This document shows, one piece after another, positions 1 through 59,535 of a stretch of 64,000 bases of DNA (within the stretch, counting starts at the first letter, position 1; every line of letters begins with the position of its first letter). The DNA lies in the IMG/VR virus record IMGVR_UViG_3300034072_002211, positions 1 through 64,000 of that record; one strand, given 5' to 3'. The notes under the pieces are model-generated. The model was given only the letters and a program-made list of their open reading frames with translations. It ran no database searches and was not told the DNA's origin. Position numbers and translations under genes: made by a program.

Positions 1-2475
1 AGGTCGGATGGTAACGGCAACAGCTCGCCCAACACTGGCTTCTTCCTCTACTTCAAGCAGGGCACACTACAGAAGACCGACTATGCGATCTCTGAGCCAC
101 AGGAAAACCGCACCATCTATCTGGATACCCAGAACGTCAACGAAACTGACGTGTGGGTTCAGACGGTTGATGACTTTGGTTCGCTTCTGCCAAACGGTGA
201 TTGGACTCGTGTGGGTCACGTCCCCAGCGACGATCTCGTCAAGGTTCTGCTGACTACTGAGAACATCACCTACAACTCCATTGATCCAGAGGTTCAGACG
301 ATCTACCAGGTCGTTACTCAAGAACAGGACCGCGTTGCTCTGAGGTTTGGTGACGGTCGCTTCGGCAAGTCTCCAGTTGGCAACCTGCGCGTTTGGTATC
401 GTGTTTCTGCGAATCAGAACCTCAACATTCGTCCTGAAGACATGCAGGGCATTAGCATCCAGGTTCCTTTCTACGCACGCAACAATACCCAGAAGCGCGT
501 GACTTTCACCTTTGCGCTTCAGGAAGCTGTCAACAACAGCGTGGCAAGCGAGACCAACGCTGATATCCGTCGTCGCGCTGCTCGTGCGTATGGCACCCAG
601 GGTCGAATGGTGTCTGGCTCGGACTACAATGAGCTGCCAGTCCAGACCAATCTGGCCGTCAAGCTCAAGGCCGTGAACCGCGTTTATTCTGGCCAGAGCC
701 GTTTCATCGATCTCAACGACCCAACTGGTAACTATCAGAACACTCAGGTCTTTGCTGACGATGGTGCGTTCTACCTGCTGGAGAAGAACGATTCCGTGGA
801 AGTTGCCCACACTGTGGCTTCCGTGGAAGAGATGATGACCAACTATATCGCGACTGTGGCATCTAGTGTTCCTCTGCGCGACTTCTACAGCAACTGGCTC
901 TACAGAAATCTACCAGCAGACCAAATCTACTTGCCAACCTATAATCACTTCTCCAACGACTATACGGCGCGTTCCGATACCCGCCGCGAAGTTCGTGAGA
1001 ACCTAGAACTCAACCGCACCTTTGCTCTGGGCTTCAACAACGACCCAGCTGAAGGTTGGTATGTGCTGAGCTCTAGCGAGATCAACCCTGATCTCACCGC
1101 TGGTTATGAGTTTGGAACTACGGCAAACCCTGGTCCGAACAGCTGGCTCATCCATGTGGAATACACCAGTGGCTTCTGGCGTATTACCAACCGCGGCCTC
1201 AACTATGTCTTTGAGTCGGAGCAGGACTGCAAGTTCTTCTTTGTTAGCGACTACAAGAGCATTGACCCCAACACGGGTAAGGCCGGTTCGGACACCATCA
1301 CGTTGCTCAGGGCACCTAACAACTTCAACGGTGTTGTGCTCAAGCGTCCTGATCCCAACAACTCGGCGGTACTCCAGGATGTCAGGCTCTTTGAGGATCT
1401 GGTCCTCAAGCTTGAGGCACCATTTGTCTACGATGACGGCTTCCATGAGCCTTCGCGTGTCAAGGTGCGCTTCAACGATCGTCTGAGCGATGGTATTCCA
1501 GACTTTCCATACACCTACAAGGCACTCAAGAACCTCGATCCCAGCAAGAATGCGATTGTTCACTTGAACACCTATGATACTGACGGCTATCCAGTGCAGA
1601 AGCTAGTCAAGCGTCTGAGCACGGGTGAGAACGGTGTGATCACTGGTCAGCTGATGCCAGGTGTGTTTGGCTTTGTGGAGCGCGTTGAAGGTGGAAATCG
1701 TCTGGTGAGCATCTACAAGGGTAATCCCGCCTACTTGACGCCAAAGGCCGCTGATATGGTTCTTTTCCCTGGTAGTGATTCGCTTCCTGTCACTGACCGT
1801 GCCGCTGATTTCGTTTCGGTTTCGGGTGACAAGTTCACGGTTCAGGAAGGTATCAACGGTCTGATCTACAAGTGGCAGCATTTTGCTCCATCGAACCATC
1901 GCATCGACCCAGCAATCTCGAACATCATCGATATCTTTGTTCTCACTCGTGAGTATAATGATTCGATGATCAGCTGGCGCAACGCTGGTGCTGTCTTGGC
2001 TGATATGCCCAAGGCCCCCAGCGAACTCAACCTGAGGACCACGTTCAATCCTCTCGAGGAGTTCAAGATGTTCAGCGATGAAATCATCTGGCGTCCGGTG
2101 AAGTTCAAGCTGCTCTTTGGACAGAGTGCTGCTCCTCAGTATCAGAGCAAGTTCAAGATTGTTAAGCTGGCGGGCACCGCAATGTCCGATGGTGAAATCA
2201 AGAGCCAGGTCATCGAAGCCATCCGAGATTTCTTCGATGTAAATAACTGGGAATTTGGTGAGACGTTCTTCTTCTCTGAGTTGGGTGCCTACATTCACAG
2301 GCGCCTCAGCACTTCGATTTCGAGCGTTGAAATTGTTCCAGTTCTCAATGATAGTTACTTTGGTAACTTGCGTGAAATTAGGTGCGCTCCCGACGAGCTG
2401 TTCTTCGCAACGGCACAGGTCAGTGACATTGACATCATCAGCGCAAACACGCCAACGAACCTCAGGATTAGGTAA
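1..2475 (+). CDS. Baseplate wedge subunit (T4 gp6-like), 5'-truncated by window edge
   Basis: Frame is open from base 1 (RSDGNGNSSPNTGFFLYFKQG...), upstream of the tracked GTG at 151; contains LRFGDGRFGKSP and AYGTQGRMVSGSDY, typical of myophage gp6-like wedge proteins; TAATG overlap with next gene. Confidence 0.7.
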   Translation, partial: RSDGNGNSSPNTGFFLYFKQGTLQKTDYAISEPQENRTIYLDTQNVNETDVWVQTVDDFGSLLPNGDWTRVGHVPSDDLVKVLLTTENITYNSIDPEVQTIYQVVTQEQDRVALRFGDGRFGKSPVGNLRVWYRVSANQNLNIRPEDMQGISIQVPFYARNNTQKRVTFTFALQEAVNNSVASETNADIRRRAARAYGTQGRMVSGSDYNELPVQTNLAVKLKAVNRVYSGQSRFIDLNDPTGNYQNTQVFADDGAFYLLEKNDSVEVAHTVASVEEMMTNYIATVASSVPLRDFYSNWLYRNLPADQIYLPTYNHFSNDYTARSDTRREVRENLELNRTFALGFNNDPAEGWYVLSSSEINPDLTAGYEFGTTANPGPNSWLIHVEYTSGFWRITNRGLNYVFESEQDCKFFFVSDYKSIDPNTGKAGSDTITLLRAPNNFNGVVLKRPDPNNSAVLQDVRLFEDLVLKLEAPFVYDDGFHEPSRVKVRFNDRLSDGIPDFPYTYKALKNLDPSKNAIVHLNTYDTDGYPVQKLVKRLSTGENGVITGQLMPGVFGFVERVEGGNRLVSIYKGNPAYLTPKAADMVLFPGSDSLPVTDRAADFVSVSGDKFTVQEGINGLIYKWQHFAPSNHRIDPAISNIIDIFVLTREYNDSMISWRNAGAVLADMPKAPSELNLRTTFNPLEEFKMFSDEIIWRPVKFKLLFGQSAAPQYQSKFKIVKLAGTAMSDGEIKSQVIEAIRDFFDVNNWEFGETFFFSELGAYIHRRLSTSISSVEIVPVLNDSYFGNLREIRCAPDELFFATAQVSDIDIISANTPTNLRIR

Positions 2476-5400
2476 TGGCCAAGAAGACTAATCGTAACCC
2501 ATTCGCGTTCACTCCGATTGTCCTGGATCAGGACAACCATGAGAAGCGCCGCGTCATCAAGCAGCTTCCTGCTGTCCATCAGACTGAAACGCTTCAGAAG
2601 TTCTTTGGCGCTTCCTTGGATCATCTCTTTGATCCAGGTAAGGGTAAGCCAATCAATGGTTACGTGGGTCAGAAGCCTCTTTGGTATGATCCTGATCAGG
2701 ACTATTACCTCGAAGAGGGAACGGACGACCGCACCTTCTACCAGCTGGAAGCCAGCATGGTCAGCAAGAACGTCGAGGGTCAGCTCACTGACCTTCTGCC
2801 TTATCCTGATCTGGTTAACCAGCTGCGCTTCCAGGGCGCTCTGACGAACAACCACAACAGGTTGTTCTCGCAGGATTTCTACACCTGGTGCCCACCCATC
2901 GATCTGGACAAGATTGTCAACTTCCGCCAGTATGTCTGGCTTCCAATTGACGACGTCGCACCAACGAGCACCTTTGAAGACGGTCAGACCGACGGTTGGA
3001 TCCTAGCCGATGGTACCCCAGCCCCTGTGAGTGGTCCATACTCAGGAATCAACAAGTTCGTTGGTCGATTCGCTGGCACTCCAGCTGGCGATCAGGTTGT
3101 CAGCAAGACCTTCACGCTGAATAGCGCAATCACGACTGCTAATGCTCAGTTCGACTTCCTTAAGTTGGACTCGTGGGACTACGCTGGCGGCTCTGCTGGT
3201 GTTCGTGAGCGTTTGGTCGTTTACATCAACGATCAGGTTGCTTTTGAATTCACCCCAGTTGGTATCTCAGGTGAAGGCGGTCTAAGCCTCGGTAGTGGCA
3301 CGATTTCGCTCGGCGATATTACCGGCACCTACAACGTGACCTCACCAGGTGTTGACACTCACCTGGGCGCTTCGGCGACTTGGACTGATCGCGTTTATCG
3401 TGTTACGGTCAATCTCACTGGCACTGGTAAGACCTTCAAGCTTGGCTTTGGTTCCACTACCAACCAGGCCATCGATGACGAATCGCTTGGTATCGACAAC
3501 GTTCGCGTTTGGCAGTCCAGCAAGACTGGTATTGAACTCAACGGTCCGACTCACAAGAGCATCAGTCCTGGAACCACCAAGGACTACTTCCTGCCAGGAT
3601 ATGGTCCAACCGGCGATCCTGAGCTTAAGAAGTTCTACGATCTCAGCATCCTGACTGACAAGCTGATCCATGCTGAAGTCGATGGCGTCTCGAGGTCGTT
3701 CACTTACGTTCCGGGTCAGGACAAGATCACCTTTGACCAGCGCCCAGCTGCTGACGCGGAAGTCTCGATCTCTGTTTATAGCGATCTTGAGAATAACGCC
3801 ATTGGCCTGCCAAACGCACGTCCCGAAGCTTTCGGTGGTGTTCAGCTGAGCTCTGGTATGAGGGTGATCATTACCCTCGATCGCAACTCGGATTTCAAGA
3901 AGAGCAACGTCTATATTGTTGAAGGCGTTGGTAGCAGCATCTTCCTCATCAAGGAAGAAGATTGGGGCGCGGGCGCAGCACCTGACTATATGGTCATGGC
4001 CCGTGGCGCAGCAAACCGAAATGAGTGGTCCACCCGTAACCGTTGGTTCCATGTCAGCACTCTGCCTGACAACATGGATCCAGACTATGTGTTGAAGCAG
4101 AGGGCAACTCGTCCAATCATTGAGTTCAACAGGGATCTGGAACTCTACAACTATGGTCTGCGTCGTCGACTCGACGTTGATCTGGTCGTGGAGAACATTG
4201 AAGACCTCAATGGTTACATGAACCAGTTTCCACAGGATGTGACGCTCGGTGGTGTTCGCATCACCACTCGCGGAACCACTCTGATCAATGTTGCGGCAGT
4301 TAACCCACGCACTGGCACCACCTACGGTGACGTGTCGAGCATCCGCGTGATGGTCCGCAACACCGTGAACCCACTGCTGAACAACAATGTCCTGGTTCTG
4401 GTAAACCAGGGTGGTGCTCTCAAGTTGATCCTTGAAACTGATGGTGAGAATCCATCGGGTGAGCCAGTTTACGGTGAAGTGTTCAACGTTCTGCTGGGCA
4501 GCTACTCGGGCAAGAACCTACACTGGGATGGTACCAACTGGGTTGAAAGCCAGCACAAGGTTAAGGCTAATCAGGCTCCTCTGTTTGAGCTCTATGATCT
4601 CAACGGCAACAGCCTGCGCGATGAGGGTCTCTATCCCAACAGCACTTTCAAGGGTTCGCGACTGTTTGGCTACAGGATTGACACTACTGGTTCGCGCATT
4701 GCGGATCAGGCACTTGGCTTGCCACTGATTCACGACAACAAGGGTCAGATCCAGTTTGAGAACTATCTCTCGACTGAGACCTACCAGTATGTGGTGGGCG
4801 GCAAGTTCCTCGATATCGTGGGCTTCTACTTCCACAAGGTCGGCAATATCGACGCTGAGCTAGAGACTCTGAGTAACGACTGGTATAAGGCTCCAACTCA
4901 GACTCGCCAGTTCATGGTTGACCGTTATGTGAGCGATGGCCGCACCAAGCTCTTCAACATCAGCCAGAACGCACAGGACATCACAGTGACCCGAGGTCGC
5001 GTGAATGAGAGCAAGTCCTTCGAGCGCACCACGCTGGTTGAAGACAAGGACTTTATCCGCGTTGGTCGTCAGATCATGATCATCAACATCCAGCTGGGTG
5101 ATGTGATTGAGATCCGCACCTACAGCTCTGAGAATCCACCGGCTGATGCCAAGGGTCACTATGAGGTTCCTCTGAACCTGCAGGCTAACCCAGACAACGC
5201 TGAGGTCGATTTCATGACCAAGGGCGACTTCTACGATCACTTCAGTGAGATCATGAAGAAGCAGGCTGGTTTCAAGGGTGCTGAATACAGCGACAACAAT
5301 TTCCGTGACACCCCCAAGGCGCCAAACCTCGGCACGCATATCATTCAGCACTCTGCTGGTCTGCTGAAGACCATGTTGCTGGCTGGTAACTCGCAGCTGG

Positions 5401-28716: not shown

Positions 28717-28792
28717 TGGCGCTCCCGGTGGGGCTCGAACCCACGACCCGCAGATTTAGAGTCCGCTGCTCTGCCAGCTGAGCTACGGGAGC
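28717..28792 (-). tRNA. Amber suppressor tRNA, anticodon CUA
   Basis: 76 nt: GCTCCCG-TA-GCTC-AGCTGGCA-GAGC-A-GCGGA-CTCTAAA-TCTGC-GGGTC-GTGGG-TTCGAGC-CCCAC-CGGGAGC-G-CCA; 7-bp acceptor, D-loop GG, U33, anticodon CTA at 28757-28759, encoded CCA. Confidence 0.95.
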
Positions 28793-29951: not shown

Positions 29952-31304
29952 TTAGGACTTCCTCCATTCGGTGCCGTGAACGCCATCGGCCAGCGTGATC
30001 CCCATATCAGTGAGCTGCTGACGGATCCTATCAGCCTCCCCGTAGTTTTTGGCCCTACGTGCCTCTTGACGAGCCGCAATTAGAGCCTCGACAGCCTCCT
30101 TGTCAACACCAAGTGTCCGCCATTGGTGCGGAGTATGGTTAAAGAGACCGAGAAACTGACCAGCCTTGATCAGTCGAGCCTTTGCGGGCGCCTTGTCCTT
30201 GGCATGGTCGAGGTCATCTGCGAGTCTATGGAGGACAGACAGAGCTGTGGTGGTATTGAGGTCCTGCGATAGCGCAGAGATGATCTCTGCTGGCACATCA
30301 ACGTCCTCGGCGTAGTTGAGCTCGTCGTGCCGATAGAGGACCTCATAGAGCCCGTCGAGGGCACGATGCGCCATGTCCAGCTTGTCCATAGTAAAGTCCA
30401 TGGGCGAGCGGTAATGTGACTGCATGAAGAGGTAACGAACGCTCTCCGCGGGATACTGATCGAAAAGCTCGTTCAAGAGGATCACGTTGCCGCGGCTCTT
30501 GCTCATCTTTTCGCCATTCACTGTCAGGAGACCGTTGTGTATCCAGTAGTTGGCAAGCGGAGCACCGTTGTGGTGGCACTGGCTCTGAGCGCACTCGGCT
30601 TCATGATGCGGAAAGCGCAGATCCTGACCACCACCGTGAATGTCGATTGTTGGACGTGCGAACGTGTGGTTGATCATGGCCGAGCATTCAATATGCCAAC
30701 CCGGCCGCCCCTGGCCCCAAGGCGAGAACCAGCTTGGCTCGCCCAGCTTTGCGGGTTTCCAGAGCACGAAATCTCTGGGGTCCTTTTTCTTGGGATCGAC
30801 CTCAACCCGTGAACCCGCTTCCGTGTGGGTGTGATTTGCGAGACCGGGATGGGGATTGCTGGGAACGTGGAAGAAAACCTCCCCGTCCACCGCATAGGCA
30901 TAGCCGTGATCGATCAGTGCGATGATCATGGCAATCATACCAGGAATGTGCTGGGTGGCCCTTGGTTCCACAGTGGGCGGCAAGCAAGCCAGAGCCTCGA
31001 GATCCATATGGTAGGCCGCGAGTGCCGTGTCAGTGATCTGGCTGATCGGAACACCGCGCTCGATTGATGCTGCGATGATCTTGTCATCCACGTCCGTGAT
31101 GTTGCGGACATAGCGGACTTCGCGCTCTCCGTAGACGTGGCGCAGAAGCCGGAAGACCTGGTCGAACACGATGGCTGGGCGCGCGTTACCGATATGCGCT
31201 GGCCCATAGACCGTTGGACCACAGACATACATAGCCACCTGCTGCGAAAACGCAGGCTTGAACTCTTCCACTTGGCGGCTCTGACTGTTGTAGAATGTGA
31301 TCAT
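29952..31304 (-). CDS. cysS: Cysteinyl-tRNA synthetase
   Basis: MYVCGPTVY, HIGN, NITDVDDKII, GRPGWHIECSAM, DIHGGGQDLRFPHHEAE, KMSKS, C-terminal ADRIRQQL...I.L.D. Confidence 0.97.
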   Translation of the reverse strand: MITFYNSQSRQVEEFKPAFSQQVAMYVCGPTVYGPAHIGNARPAIVFDQVFRLLRHVYGEREVRYVRNITDVDDKIIAASIERGVPISQITDTALAAYHMDLEALACLPPTVEPRATQHIPGMIAMIIALIDHGYAYAVDGEVFFHVPSNPHPGLANHTHTEAGSRVEVDPKKKDPRDFVLWKPAKLGEPSWFSPWGQGRPGWHIECSAMINHTFARPTIDIHGGGQDLRFPHHEAECAQSQCHHNGAPLANYWIHNGLLTVNGEKMSKSRGNVILLNELFDQYPAESVRYLFMQSHYRSPMDFTMDKLDMAHRALDGLYEVLYRHDELNYAEDVDVPAEIISALSQDLNTTTALSVLHRLADDLDHAKDKAPAKARLIKAGQFLGLFNHTPHQWRTLGVDKEAVEALIAARQEARRAKNYGEADRIRQQLTDMGITLADGVHGTEWRKS

Positions 31305-55781: not shown

Positions 55782-56006
55782 TTACATCCACGTCAACTTG
55801 AACAACATCGCCTTCTGAGGGTCCTGGAACCAGATGGCTTCTACCGCGGCACCATTTCCAACTAGGCTATGGCGAGCCTTATTTTGAGACAACCAGGAGA
55901 CTATCTCAGGCTTCAAGGCAATGCGCTTGTGCTTGAACTCGTAGGGATCGCCTTTAAAGGAGGCCCATTCCCAGTGGTCCTTATACCTGATAGGAACTAT
56001 GGGCAT
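55782..56006 (-). CDS. Hypothetical protein, FxxxxDAxxFKL family
   Basis: Start MPIVP with GGAGG; LKPEIVSWL...WFQDPQKAMLFKLTWM. Confidence 0.7.
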   Translation of the reverse strand: MPIVPIRYKDHWEWASFKGDPYEFKHKRIALKPEIVSWLSQNKARHSLVGNGAAVEAIWFQDPQKAMLFKLTWM

Positions 56007-56418
56007 ATGATCCCTCCGCACCAAGTCGCCTGCGAATCTCAGCATCACTGATTGCGGCAACATTCCACACTGAGGCAAAATATCGCGCATCTTTGGTGCT
56101 TGTAAAGAAGAGGATCACGTCAGTGCCTTGCTGAACACCTGGACGCTTTTTGATCCTGAGCGCGTATTTCTTATAGACCATATTGCGCTGCTTGAGCCAA
56201 CGAGTGATCTCAGGGTTAACTCGCATTGTCCAGTTGCCATTGCCTGGATATTCGGGATTGTTGGATTCCCAACGCCAATGCTCACGACGCTTTAGGACAA
56301 CACCTACATCCAGGAAAGCTTGAACAGGATTGCCTGCTTTCTGTCGTGAACGTGAAGCATAGCGTTGAGTCCGCCTGTTGGCGTTAACGTGTAGGCCACC
56401 CTGTTCAACACCAACCAC
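55981..56418 (-). CDS. Hypothetical protein, FKL family (true start uncertain, likely downstream of tracked start)
   Basis: VNPEITRWLKQ...LFFTSTKDARYF. Confidence 0.5.
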   Translation of the reverse strand: MVGVEQGGLHVNANRRTQRYASRSRQKAGNPVQAFLDVGVVLKRREHWRWESNNPEYPGNGNWTMRVNPEITRWLKQRNMVYKKYALRIKKRPGVQQGTDVILFFTSTKDARYFASVWNVAAISDAEIRRRLGAEGSYAHSSYQV

Positions 56419-56528
56419 CGAAGGACTTCCTCTTTAAGAACCAACTGGCTACGACGATATGTCACATACTCAGATTCAAGATGCCGCTTGTCTAGTGCGA
56501 ACATCTGATCCAGAGCGGTTATATCCAT
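56304..56528 (-). CDS. Hypothetical protein, FKL family
   Basis: LKEEVLRWL...VHDRKQAILFKLSWM; ends TAG. Confidence 0.7.
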   Translation of the reverse strand: MDITALDQMFALDKRHLESEYVTYRRSQLVLKEEVLRWLVLNRVAYTLTPTGGLNAMLHVHDRKQAILFKLSWM

Positions 56529-56803
56529 GTGAGCTTGAATAGAGCCGCGTGGTTGTCTTGTTCAAATATGATTTTGCTCTGCCCACCGCCCTTGAGATTG
56601 AGGCGGTAGGGAAAGCCCATAGTGTCAAGCCATTCTTGGATCTCAGGCTTGAGGCGCCGCTTGGGCATTTGCCTGGTGTTGGGCTGACGTGGTTCGTTCT
56701 CGGGGATAGTCCAGTGAACGTTGAAATAAAGCCTGAACGACCGACGCCTGCGCTCTTTGTAGATCGCAGGGTCAGTCCATTTCTCAGGCAGTCTTTCGGG
56801 CAT
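56519..56803 (-). CDS. Hypothetical protein, FKL family
   Basis: LKPEIQEWL...IFEQDNHAALFKLTWI. Confidence 0.7.
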   Translation of the reverse strand: MPERLPEKWTDPAIYKERRRRSFRLYFNVHWTIPENEPRQPNTRQMPKRRLKPEIQEWLDTMGFPYRLNLKGGGQSKIIFEQDNHAALFKLTWI

Positions 56804-57944: not shown

Positions 57945-59435
57945 TCACCAACGCTGACTGATCAGCATTCCAGGGAAGAATCGCCCCCAGATACTCTCCG
58001 TGATGAAGGGCATGATGGGATGGAACAGCTTGAGGAGGATTCGCAATCCGTCCATGAGCGCGGACAATGCCTCGGCATCATCAGCGTAGAGCCGTTCCTT
58101 GATGTCCTCGAGGTATGAGCCGCAGAAGTCATCGAAGAGAATCCTCCGGCACTCAATAGCTGCCTTGCTGAACTCGAGATCCTTATAGAGGGCTCGAATA
58201 TGCTCCTGTCGCTCCCTGAGATGCTCTAGCAGGGCCTCATCGCGCTCATGTGTGCTCGACATAGCCGTGATACCGATACGTCTCAGATGGTGCTCAGCGA
58301 AGCGAGCAGCATTCCACAACTTGGTCGCTGTGGCTTTACCAGCTTGGAACTTCTCGTCCCACATCTTCATGTCTTGTGCTGGCTGAGTTGCCTCCGCAAG
58401 AGCATACCGCATTGCGTCGCAACCATAGCGGTCGATAATGGTTAGCGGATCAATACCGTTGCCCAGACTTTTGCTCATCTTGCGACCCTGCTTGTCACGC
58501 ATGATCCCGTGGAGGTAGATTGTCTGGAATGGCATCTTGTCTGTGAGGAGCAGACCCATCATCAGCATACGGGCGCACCAGAAGAACAGAATGTCGTCCG
58601 CGGTTTCAATCATGTCCGCAGGATAGAACTTCCGCATGTCTGGAGTATCGTTGGGCCAGCCAAGAGTGGCAAAGGGCCACAGGGCTGAGCTGAACCAAGT
58701 GTCCAAGCATCCTTCCTCACGCTGGTAACCTTCGGGACCCTCTAGACCAATGAAGATCTTCTCGCCCTTGGTCCAGATGGGAAGTTTGTGACCCCAACGG
58801 ATCTGACGGCTGATATTCCAGGGCTCGATGTTGTCCAAGAAGTGGATCAATGTCTTGTTCTCATGCTCAGGAATGATCTTGAGCTCACCCCGTATCATAC
58901 GATTTCTCAATTCCTTTGCAGGAATACGCATGTCGATAAACCACTGATTATCAGTGGTATAAAGGAGGCCTTGTGCGTGGATGCGGGCCAAAGCTTCAAT
59001 CACAGCATCGGAATATGATTTGTCGAGAGTAAAGGTATAGCGCGACCAATCACAGGATGCGCCAGTGCGGCGGATCTGCTGGTTGATCTCACCAGACAAG
59101 TTGGCCTTGTAGGTCTCCGCGAACGCGTCGAAGGCGGGACCCTTGGGATCCAAACCTTGAGCCAACATGGCTTCGTCCAGCTTTTGCTGAGTTGCTAGAC
59201 CCGCGTGATCAGTGCCAGGAAGCCATAGAGCTGCCTTGCCCTCAAAGCGAGCGTTGCGGATAGAGATGTCTTGAAGGGTTGTGAAAAGCGCGTGCCCCAT
59301 ATGGAGTTTGCCCGTGATATTGGGCGGGGGCATCGGGATAAAGTAGGGCTCTTGGCCCTCGGGCTTGAATGCGCCGCTTGCTTCCCACTTGTGATAGATG
59401 GACGCTTCTTCAGTGTGATCGAAGCGTTTGGTCAG
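57945..59435 (-). CDS. valS: Minimal valyl-tRNA synthetase lacking the CP1 editing domain and C-terminal coiled coil; non-canonical start
   Basis: PPPNITGKLHMGH, DHAGLATQ, WNISRQIRWGH, LDTWFSSALWP, DILFFW, KMSKS; ValRS-like N-terminus (KRFDHTEEASIYHKWEASGAF) extends 34 codons above tracked ATG to CTG 59435. Confidence 0.88.
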   Translation of the reverse strand: MTKRFDHTEEASIYHKWEASGAFKPEGQEPYFIPMPPPNITGKLHMGHALFTTLQDISIRNARFEGKAALWLPGTDHAGLATQQKLDEAMLAQGLDPKGPAFDAFAETYKANLSGEINQQIRRTGASCDWSRYTFTLDKSYSDAVIEALARIHAQGLLYTTDNQWFIDMRIPAKELRNRMIRGELKIIPEHENKTLIHFLDNIEPWNISRQIRWGHKLPIWTKGEKIFIGLEGPEGYQREEGCLDTWFSSALWPFATLGWPNDTPDMRKFYPADMIETADDILFFWCARMLMMGLLLTDKMPFQTIYLHGIMRDKQGRKMSKSLGNGIDPLTIIDRYGCDAMRYALAEATQPAQDMKMWDEKFQAGKATATKLWNAARFAEHHLRRIGITAMSSTHERDEALLEHLRERQEHIRALYKDLEFSKAAIECRRILFDDFCGSYLEDIKERLYADDAEALSALMDGLRILLKLFHPIMPFITESIWGRFFPGMLISQRW

Positions 59436-59452
59436 ACTTCCAACGTGGTCAT
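59432..59452 (-). CDS. Putative leader peptide MTTLEV coupled to valS
   Basis: GGAGG-N8-ATG ACC ACG TTG GAA GTC TGA; TGA overlaps valS-frame CTG as CTGA. Confidence 0.45.
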   Translation of the reverse strand: MTTLEV

Positions 59453-59476
59453 TTCGTTATCCTCCAGATAAGAGTA

Positions 59477-59506
59477 TAGGGAGAGTGGAACAATCCACTC
59501 TCCCTA
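59477..59506 (-). terminator. 13-bp hairpin between clamp and valS
   Basis: TAGGGAGAGTGGA-acaa-TCCACTCTCCCTA. Confidence 0.65.
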
Positions 59507-59535
59507 CTTATAGCATCGCGCTGGGCGCGATCCTA

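Follow-up and report, generated by a model that had tools for sequence, protein, structure and literature searches.

A conserved family of huge-phage valyl-tRNA synthetases without the CP1 proofreading domain, mostly lacking a normal start codon and located behind a small valine-codon-containing leader reading frame

Can a phage valyl-tRNA synthetase (ValRS) dispense with its proofreading domain, and is such a gene an isolated oddity or a member of a conserved family? The question arises from a minus-strand reading frame in a window of 64,000 nucleotides (positions 1 to 64,000 of the 277-kb IMG/VR record IMGVR_UViG_3300034072_002211). A sequence-only reading described this frame as an editing-deficient mini-ValRS, in which the CP1 region and the C-terminal coiled coil are missing while HIGH, KMSKS and the anticodon helix bundle are intact. 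That observation is confirmed by our analysis. The frame (57945..59444, minus strand) encodes a ValRS core of about 496–499 aa and ends at TGA 57947-57945. In an alignment to Thermus thermophilus ValRS (PDB 1GAX, 862 aa), query residues 15-161 match residues 18-169 and query residues 157-483 match residues 351-691; about 180 residues, comprising CP1 plus its linkers, are therefore missing, as is everything after about residue 700, i.e., the last ~160 residues with the anticodon-stem-binding and coiled-coil domains. A MAFFT alignment with CP1-bearing 700-aa relatives shows GLLYT joined directly to TDNQWF (junction at 58941..58970, minus strand), where those relatives have about 190 residues including the CPRC...CYRC Zn knuckle. 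The HIGH motif (HMGH, 59292..59303), KMSKS (58467..58481) and the anticodon-binding helix bundle (Pfam Anticodon_1, PF08264; 57978..58358), all on the minus strand, are present, and the protein ends 10 residues after the bundle at ..LISQRW.

The assignment to ValRS is supported by both sequence and predicted structure. PRK05729 gives 531.7 bits against 230 for ileS, and 1GAX is matched with E = 2e-107 against 4e-35 for IleRS; ValRS also exceeds LeuRS and MetRS. The scores fall below the curated whole-protein cut-offs of the NCBIfam equivalogs (531.7 against 704 for NF004349, and 469.4 against 612.1 for TIGR00422), because two domains are missing. AF2 modeling yielded a confident model (pLDDT 95.2, pTM 0.92) with no disordered gap, and a Foldseek search placed 1gax_A first with a query TM of 0.94. 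Residues P36, P37, N39, D76, W247, I282 and W286, which map through the 1GAX alignment to the valine-pocket residues P41, P42, N44, D81, W456, I491 and W495, are invariant across 80 family members, as are HIGH and KMSKS, including K319 and K322. The valine pocket is thus unchanged from canonical ValRS, and there is no sign of a stricter first sieve.

The sequence-only reading treated the gene as one odd enzyme; it belongs instead to a deep family of at least 100 protein clusters of 430–520 aa at 32–86% identity. dN/dS is 0.08–0.10 against relatives of 80–87% identity, with dS of 1 or more, and is about 0.1 over the whole length, including the anticodon bundle. The contigs reach 200–580 kb, the IMG/VR records include genomes with direct terminal repeats, and wherever the contig could be classified (IMG/VR records, cultured phage RAS14) the family lies on huge phages. 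It also occurs in the cultured Stenotrophomonas jumbo phages RAS14 and CM1. For a 581-kb contig of Sphingomonas sp. 3-13AW, the window-type DNA polymerase was not found in that genome, and no host inference was drawn from it. Megablast of the locus against GenBank phages returned no match. Viral scans with three other family members returned the same nine IMG/VR contigs for two of them and nothing for the third. A metagenome scan with the family alignment selected motifs shared with canonical ValRS, and 79 of the 80 loci returned were full-length bacterial ValRS, which served only as the outgroup for the tree. In that tree, all mini-ValRS sequences lie on one side of a 99% branch from all CP1-bearing ValRS.

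Two outcomes that would have overturned the editing-deficient interpretation, retention of CP1 or an editing domain encoded in trans, were examined, and neither was found. CP1 is absent from the protein, and no CP1 profile hit (E > 2), no YbaK-family hit and no second ValRS were found in the record, which is about 60% complete. The same held in five relatives, four of them complete (436–578 kb) and a fifth at 72%. The record carries 25 tRNAs plus a CysRS but no tRNA-Val, whereas a syntenic, complete 436-kb relative carries 59 tRNAs, including three tRNA-Val genes with A35, C36, A73 and an encoded CCA, in the tRNA array that the window's record truncates. C-terminal extension by stop-codon recoding was rejected, since the stop is TGA, the two suppressor-like tRNAs read TAG, and the downstream frame has further stops and no ValRS similarity; a crude ORF-coverage test also gave no sign of TAG or TGA recoding.

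Considering these data together, we are fairly confident that the gene encodes a functional, minimal ValRS, with a Rossmann catalytic core, an SC-fold and an anticodon helix bundle, that belongs to a huge phage's own translation module. The analysis itself establishes the domain architecture, the (modeled) fold, the conservation of catalytic and pocket residues, purifying selection, the distribution of the family on large phage or phage-like contigs, and the absence of a phage-encoded CP1 within the genomes searched; catalytic activity, tRNA specificity and the lack of editing are inferred, with no biochemical evidence for any member. In this view, the enzyme most likely activates valine and charges tRNA-Val, its substrates being the phage's own tRNA-Val, seen in the complete relative, and probably host tRNA-Val too, with recognition through A35/C36 in the retained helix bundle. 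In ValRS, post-transfer editing in CP1 is heavily favoured (PMC7373986); the phage enzyme would therefore be unable to hydrolyse Thr-tRNA-Val, while the unchanged pocket should misactivate threonine at the canonical rate. The phage would either tolerate Val-to-Thr errors during its short infection or leave their clearance to host trans-editing factors. Loss of the C-terminal domains could weaken tRNA binding, and for IleRS and ValRS, unlike LeuRS, a CP1-less enzyme is not known to have been shown to aminoacylate. The interpretation offered by the sequence-only reading is accordingly supported in part: its structural claims all hold, service of a dedicated tRNA gains indirect support from the complete relative, and tolerance of mistranslation is a reasonable inference, but there is no evidence for or against exploitation of mistranslation or evasion of a host system targeting ValRS.

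The sequence-only reading placed the start at 59435, which is a CTG (giving a 496-aa protein) and not the conserved start position, and it missed that the gene lacks a canonical start and lies behind a conserved upstream ORF (uORF). The frame contains no ATG, GTG or TTG between the in-frame TAA (59459-59457) and an internal ATG (59331..59333, MPPPN), and the homologous first codon in relatives corresponds to GTT 59444-59442. Automated ORF detection starts at the internal ATG, and the collection's gene call for this very sequence (451 aa) starts later still, at MGHA; the internal ATG is not the biological N-terminus, since the 27 codons upstream are under purifying selection (dN/dS about 0.15). 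Current annotations thus truncate the protein, 88 of 109 cluster representatives (81%) being called from internal ATGs. A pseudogene or sequencing error was rejected as the cause of the missing start, because the same arrangement occurs in 22 independent assemblies and the N-terminal codons are under selection.

In 22 of 22 loci, a strong SD-ATG opens a 6–10-codon uORF of the pattern M(xx)[L/W/C][D/E/N/Q]V..stop in the +1 frame relative to ValRS, and the ValRS frame begins with GTT (14 loci, with no canonical start anywhere in the frame) or GTG (8 loci). In the window, the uORF (59432..59452, minus strand) reads ATG ACC ACG TTG GAA GTC TGA (MTTLEV), and its TGA overlaps the CTG-ACC (Leu-Thr) codons of the ValRS frame. 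The Shine-Dalgarno GGAGG (59461..59465, minus strand) lies 8 nt from the uORF ATG and 16 nt from the GTT; across the 22 loci, these distances are 5–9 nt to the uORF ATG and 10–16 nt to the ValRS-frame GUK. A 14-bp terminator-like hairpin (59476..59507, minus strand) is located directly upstream of the leader. The geometry persists down to 32% protein identity (RAS14). The leader is unique to this gene in the genome, no similar leader being found upstream of the phage CysRS or elsewhere. RNAalifold detected no consensus structure and single-sequence z-scores were unremarkable; the only Rfam match was far below threshold and on the other strand. No expression data bear on the leader, since the only sequencing run found to hold the sequence is the probable source DNA metagenome, a subsurface sample.

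Ribosomes recruited to the uORF would have to enter the ValRS frame, and two tentative mechanisms can be weighed. The somewhat better placed, though still less than likely, is termination-reinitiation: ribosomes that have just translated the uORF would initiate at the weak GUG or GUU, or at the CUG/UUG/AUG overlapping the uORF stop, so that the uORF delivers ribosomes and throttles expression to a low level. The first base G and second base U of the ValRS-frame codon are invariant even though the uORF codon supplying the G encodes seven different residues, and the uORF stop is always placed at the first position the ValRS sequence allows, 9–24 nt from GUK. The stop overlap is a classical ATGA in RAS14, TTGA in one further locus (L003) and CTGA in the window, but CTAA, CTAG, TTAA or ATAA in 17 of 22 loci, with CUA or UUA at the overlap position in most; a GUG lies 9–24 nt upstream in only eight loci. 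GUU differs from AUG at two positions and is not an established bacterial start codon, and reinitiation does not explain the invariant Val codon, the D/E/N/Q codon or the match between the base before the P-site codon and that codon's first base. Alternatively, we hypothesize, as a possible but unlikely route, a programmed -1 frameshift at the conserved X XAN GUN heptamer (G GAA GTC, 59435..59441, minus strand). With Val-tRNA-Val scarce, the ribosome would wait with GUN in the A site while the P-site tRNA (on GAA, GAC, AAC or CAA) slips back one base onto GGA, AAA or CCA, and the enzyme would be made in proportion to the shortage of its own product. The Val codon (GTA, GTC or GTT) is invariant, and the base before the P-site codon equals that codon's first base in 22 of 22 loci across three base identities (G-GA, A-AA, C-CA), although synonymous alternatives exist. 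ValRS-frame residues at these codons are not conserved (Gly/Lys/Pro; Arg/Ser), whereas uORF residues are (D/E/N/Q; V); the uORF residues [L/W/C][D/E/N/Q]V are conserved up to GUN, with conservation switching to the ValRS frame after it. However, the site is not a canonical X XXY YYZ heptamer, with only two of three pairs kept on slippage, there is no conserved downstream structure, and the invariant G of GUK is unexplained and points instead to a start-like codon; eight loci do have GTG, and RAS14 has an ATG overlapping the uORF stop. If true, this reading would represent a valine-charging sensor, the first natural case of hungry-codon frameshifting with a useful product (none is known; PMC5009743) and a new way of autoregulating an aminoacyl-tRNA synthetase (aaRS).

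Two further readings concern the enzyme itself. It is unlikely, although not excluded, that editing is supplied in trans and the system is not error-prone: free-standing factors that deacylate Ser- or Thr-mischarged tRNAs, including ValRS products, exist in bacteria (PMC7373986), so that a host deacylase such as ProXp-ST or a phage protein in the unsequenced ~40% of the genome could clear Thr-tRNA-Val, but the searches of the record and the five relatives gave no phage-encoded candidate. A decaying remnant or a non-translational aaRS-like enzyme, making for example aminoacyl-adenylate or Ap4A or feeding another pathway, is very doubtful. The sub-threshold family score, the missing C-terminal tRNA-binding domains and the absent canonical start would fit this reading, whereas purifying selection, family-wide conservation of KMSKS and anticodon-domain residues, and co-occurrence with large tRNA arrays that include tRNA-Val argue against it; moreover, the 700-aa CP1-bearing relatives end at the same ..LIxxxW(P) point.

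ValRS is the textbook double-sieve enzyme, and a large, conserved natural family that has discarded the second sieve would show that valine-codon fidelity is dispensable for a whole group of replicators. The family offers a ready-made minimal ValRS of about 500 aa for studying what CP1 and the C-terminal domains contribute to charging, allows Val-to-Thr mistranslation to be measured in infected cells, and may be useful for engineering; the cultured phages RAS14 and CM1 make these ideas testable. Huge phages carry up to 15 aaRS and many tRNAs, the enzymes being proposed to charge the phage tRNAs (Al-Shayeb et al. 2020, PMC7162821), and the present gene fits that module, although that paper does not describe loss of editing domains, the leader ORF or the missing start codon; the literature searched contained no description of a CP1-less ValRS or of this leader. 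The leader points to an undescribed translational control, possibly a sensor of valine charging. In this hypothetical form it resembles the prfB (RF2) autoregulatory frameshift and the infC AUU start, where expression of a translation factor is tied to a recoding or weak-start signal reporting on the factor's own activity. As in prfB, a slow A-site codon cognate to the gene product would lie next to a slippery P-site codon close to an SD; prfB, however, shifts +1 at a stop codon, whereas a -1 shift at a sense (Val) codon would be needed here. For the enzyme, the second-best structural match is the naturally CP1-less LeuRS of Mycoplasma mobile (PDB 3ZIU), which shows the same kind of domain loss, CP1 being replaced by a short linker with the catalytic core intact, in a class Ia enzyme of a genome-dependent replicator, albeit with a different amino-acid specificity and in a cellular parasite. 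A CP1-less LeuRS also occurs in a related huge phage, so loss of editing may be a general feature of phage translation modules.

The IMG/VR virus record whose first 64 kb form the window is 277,444 bp long, has a CheckV completeness estimate of 60% and comes from a subsurface metagenome. On the minus strand, one frame is open from the in-frame TAA at 59459-59457 to the TGA at 57947-57945, and translation from position 59435, the start proposed in the sequence-only reading, gives a protein of 496 aa (P0001). ValRS is the best match by a wide margin: NCBIfam PRK05729 scores 531.7 bits and TIGR00422 scores 469.4, against 230 for ileS, while PDB 1GAX, the T. thermophilus ValRS, matches at E = 2e-107, with the next hit being an IleRS at 4e-35. 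Both matches come in two pieces, with query residues 15-161 aligning to 1GAX 18-169 and query 157-483 aligning to 1GAX 351-691. So about 180 residues, comprising the CP1 editing insertion and its two linker strands, are missing, and the protein stops near 1GAX residue 700 of 862. An alignment with related 700-aa ValRS that still carry CP1 shows the junction exactly: GLLYT is followed at once by TDNQWF, where the others have about 190 residues including the CPRC...CYRC zinc knuckle. A second Zn knuckle present in 1GAX (CEDC...CEAC) is also absent. HMGH, KMSKS and the Anticodon_1 helix bundle are present, and the sequence-only reading, which had described a shortened ValRS without CP1 and the C-terminal coiled coil but with intact catalytic motifs and anticodon bundle, is therefore correct in its account of the protein.

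An AlphaFold2 model built on an 80-sequence family alignment has a mean pLDDT of 95.2 and a pTM of 0.92, with no low-confidence segment across the junction. Foldseek places the model on 1gax_A with a query TM of 0.94 and an rmsd of 2.8 Å; the next hit is Mycoplasma mobile LeuRS (3ziu), the known natural class Ia synthetase without CP1. A word-index protein search returned about 110 cluster representatives of 411-549 aa with the same architecture, at 44-86% identity, and the contigs carrying them often reach 200-580 kb. IMG/VR holds nine such contigs besides this record, including genomes of 416-578 kb, three of them with direct terminal repeats and four rated 100% complete. The cultured Stenotrophomonas jumbo phages RAS14 and CM1 carry a 32%-identical version annotated as ‘valyl-tRNA synthetase’, which makes both the enzymology and the leader mechanism discussed below directly testable. 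Among 185,579 species-representative bacterial and archaeal genomes, only one contig carries the family, namely that of the cultured isolate Sphingomonas sp. 3-13AW (L165; 581,572 bp). The family also occurs on metagenome contigs of 1.0-1.86 Mb (L040, L137, L142); these and the Sphingomonas contig may be very large phages, plasmids, prophages or misassemblies, and the window-type DNA polymerase was not found in the Sphingomonas genome.

Against relatives 80-87% identical, dN/dS is 0.08-0.10 with dS of 1 or more, and we conclude that the protein is real, folded according to the model, and under selection. A maximum-likelihood tree was built from 79 sequences over 442 shared columns; all mini-ValRS, including RAS14 and a member on a 1.86-Mb contig, lie on one side of a 99% SH-aLRT branch, and all CP1-bearing ValRS lie on the other, which is compatible with a single old loss of CP1. 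The tree was obtained with a quick method, and the long branches for RAS14 and for L029, an IMG/VR contig of 507,910 bp from a separate phage, are uncertain. L029 encodes, at 1452-3000, a separately derived short ValRS of about 510 aa with a CP1 remnant of ~45 residues and a normal ATG start; in the tree it nests among full-length ValRS, so CP1 reduction happened more than once in huge phages.

Retention of CP1, or its provision in trans, had been named in advance as the finding that would overturn the sequence-only reading, and neither holds for the record or for the five relatives searched. A profile of CP1 segments, searched at maximum sensitivity against all six-frame ORFs of the 277-kb record, gave nothing better than E = 2.6. 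The valS model at E ≤ 10 found in the record only the two halves of the mini-ValRS and a cross-hit on a CysRS gene, and the YbaK/ProX model found nothing. In the genomes of five relatives, four of them complete, no ValRS reaches the family cut-off and no isolated match to model positions ~190-350 exists. The amino-acid pocket is unchanged, as the residues aligned to 1GAX P41, P42, N44, D81, W456, I491 and W495, which reportedly line the valine pocket in that structure, are invariant in the family, and there is thus no sign of a stricter first sieve. In ValRS, transfer to tRNA is about 200 times faster than adenylate hydrolysis, so that post-transfer editing in CP1 is the main correction route (PMC7373986). 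An enzyme of this architecture should therefore release Thr-tRNA-Val, although host free-standing deacylases such as ProXp-ST (PMC7373986) cannot be excluded.

The record carries 25 tRNA genes, none for valine, and its main array (record 253145..277317, outside the window) runs off the 3' end of the record directly after tRNA-His. The complete 435,856-bp relative G001, with 76% ValRS identity, aligns to about 45% of the record at 72% nucleotide identity and has the same array in the same order (G001 292007..326031), continuing to 59 tRNAs. These include three tRNA-Val, two UAC and one GAC, with A35, C36, discriminator A73 and an encoded CCA, and the window's phage very probably has them too, in its missing part. 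Two tRNA genes with anticodon CUA, of amber-suppressor type and labeled ‘Pyl’ by ARAGORN, lie at 28717..28792 on the minus strand of the window and at 253634..253712 on the minus strand of the record. Both are conserved in G001, but an ORF-coverage test, albeit a crude one, gave no sign of TAG recoding.

The window also encodes a full-length CysRS of 450 aa at 29952..31304 on the minus strand (TIGR00435 455.8 bits against a cut-off of 340), with a normal ATG start and no leader ORF like that of the ValRS gene. Relatives show further trimmed synthetases. A related 415-kb phage encodes a 645-aa LeuRS lacking CP1 (L174:300-2237, corresponding to G005:C1 ~300199-302136), which matches TIGR00396 at 756 bits in two pieces with model positions ~230-410 missing. 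Two other trimmed genes sit next to the mini-ValRS in relatives, namely a 317-aa LysRS catalytic core without the anticodon-binding domain, which also resembles EpmA/GenX (locus L140:3461-4414), and a 264-aa AlaRS-like N-terminal piece (locus L139:3174-3968). In contrast, IleRS-like genes in the same phage group (G002, G004, L142) keep CP1, at 815-961 aa.

Huge phages are known to carry up to 15 synthetases and many tRNAs, proposed to charge phage tRNAs (PMC7162821); loss of editing domains is not described there, and we found no paper describing a CP1-less ValRS. The best-supported reading is a minimal, editing-free ValRS that keeps valine charging going for the phage's own tRNA set during infection, where the architecture and its conservation rest on the sequences, whereas activity, tRNA preference and error rate are inferred. 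By sequence and predicted fold the protein is a ValRS, but it falls below the curated score cut-off of the family and lacks both CP1 and the C-terminal domain, and it would work like the CP1-less LeuRS of Mycoplasma mobile. What is new relative to known ValRS is a family-wide, phage-borne enzyme, inferred to be editing-free, together with an undescribed, conserved arrangement of a leader ORF and no start codon. The structural observation of the sequence-only reading is thus confirmed. Its interpretation is only partly supported: tolerance of errors and service to phage tRNAs are plausible, while the proposed exploitation of errors or evasion of a host system remains conjectural.

The start of the gene yielded a second, unexpected finding. 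The proposed start at 59435 is a CTG, and between the in-frame TAA and the internal ATG at 59333 the ValRS frame has no ATG, GTG or TTG. Yet the 27 codons before that ATG are under purifying selection in this frame (dN 0.08, dS 0.52-0.60 between close pairs) and also align to the canonical ValRS N-terminus, so they are translated. Directly upstream lies GGAGG, then 8 nt, then ATG ACC ACG TTG GAA GTC TGA, a 6-codon ORF in the +1 frame whose TGA overlaps the Leu-Thr codons of the ValRS frame. A 42-nt stretch including this leader is identical or differs at one base in relatives whose coding sequence has dS of 1.0-1.7. The leader occurs nowhere else in the genome and matches no Rfam family, and a terminator-like hairpin at 59507-59476 precedes it.

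To assess the conservation of this arrangement, 22 loci spanning the family down to 32% identity were collected. In all 22, an SD lies 5-9 nt from an ATG that opens a 6-10-codon upstream ORF (uORF) reading M-(0 or 2 residues)-[L/W/C]-[D/E/N/Q]-V-(0-4 residues)-stop; the ValRS frame is always the -1 frame of this ORF, and the uORF stop always overlaps the first hydrophobic codon of the ValRS frame. The ValRS-frame codon at the position where gene callers place the start is GTG in 8 loci and GTT in 14, and this GTK codon is 10-16 nt from the SD, so the SD serves the ATG, not the GTK. Of 109 family cluster representatives, 88 were called from internal ATGs (MPPPN, MGHA or inside the N-terminal helix) and 14 at the V position, and NCBI's annotation of the Sphingomonas copy also starts internally; the lack of a canonical start is therefore the family's normal state, not an error. 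Across the overlapped nine bases G-U-K-X-X-A-M-G-U, the amino acids of the ValRS frame are not conserved (Gly/Lys/Pro, then Arg/Ser), whereas those of the uORF are conserved, with an acid or amide followed by Val encoded by GTA, GTC or GTT. The base preceding the D/E/N/Q codon equals that codon's first base in 22 of 22 loci, across three base identities.

These features are what a P-site -1 slip (XAN to XXA) with a slow Val codon in the A site would require, and under this hypothesis ValRS synthesis would respond to shortage of Val-tRNA-Val, resembling RF2 autoregulation but differing in direction and trigger. A 2016 review states that no natural useful hungry-codon frameshift is known (PMC5009743). 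Several points count against such a mechanism: the site is only partly slippery, no conserved downstream structure exists, the invariant G of GUK is better explained by a start-like codon used after termination-reinitiation, and RAS14 has a classical ATGA overlap. We consider reinitiation or weak initiation possible, although short of an even chance, and the Val-sensing frameshift somewhat less likely still and tentative, leaving room for other mechanisms.

A small hairpin, CUUCG...CGAAG, recurs at ~59395..59425 on the minus strand and at the homologous place in most relatives, formed by the Phe-Asp and Glu-Glu codons of the N-terminal FDH..EE motif; its distance from the leader varies and RNAalifold does not support it, and it is probably a by-product of codon choice. 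Elsewhere in the window, three small tandem ORFs of 74-102 aa on the minus strand (55782..56090, 56304..56528 and 56519..56803), without a PHROG match, all end in ..LFKL(T/S)W(M/I) and apparently form a local paralogous family.
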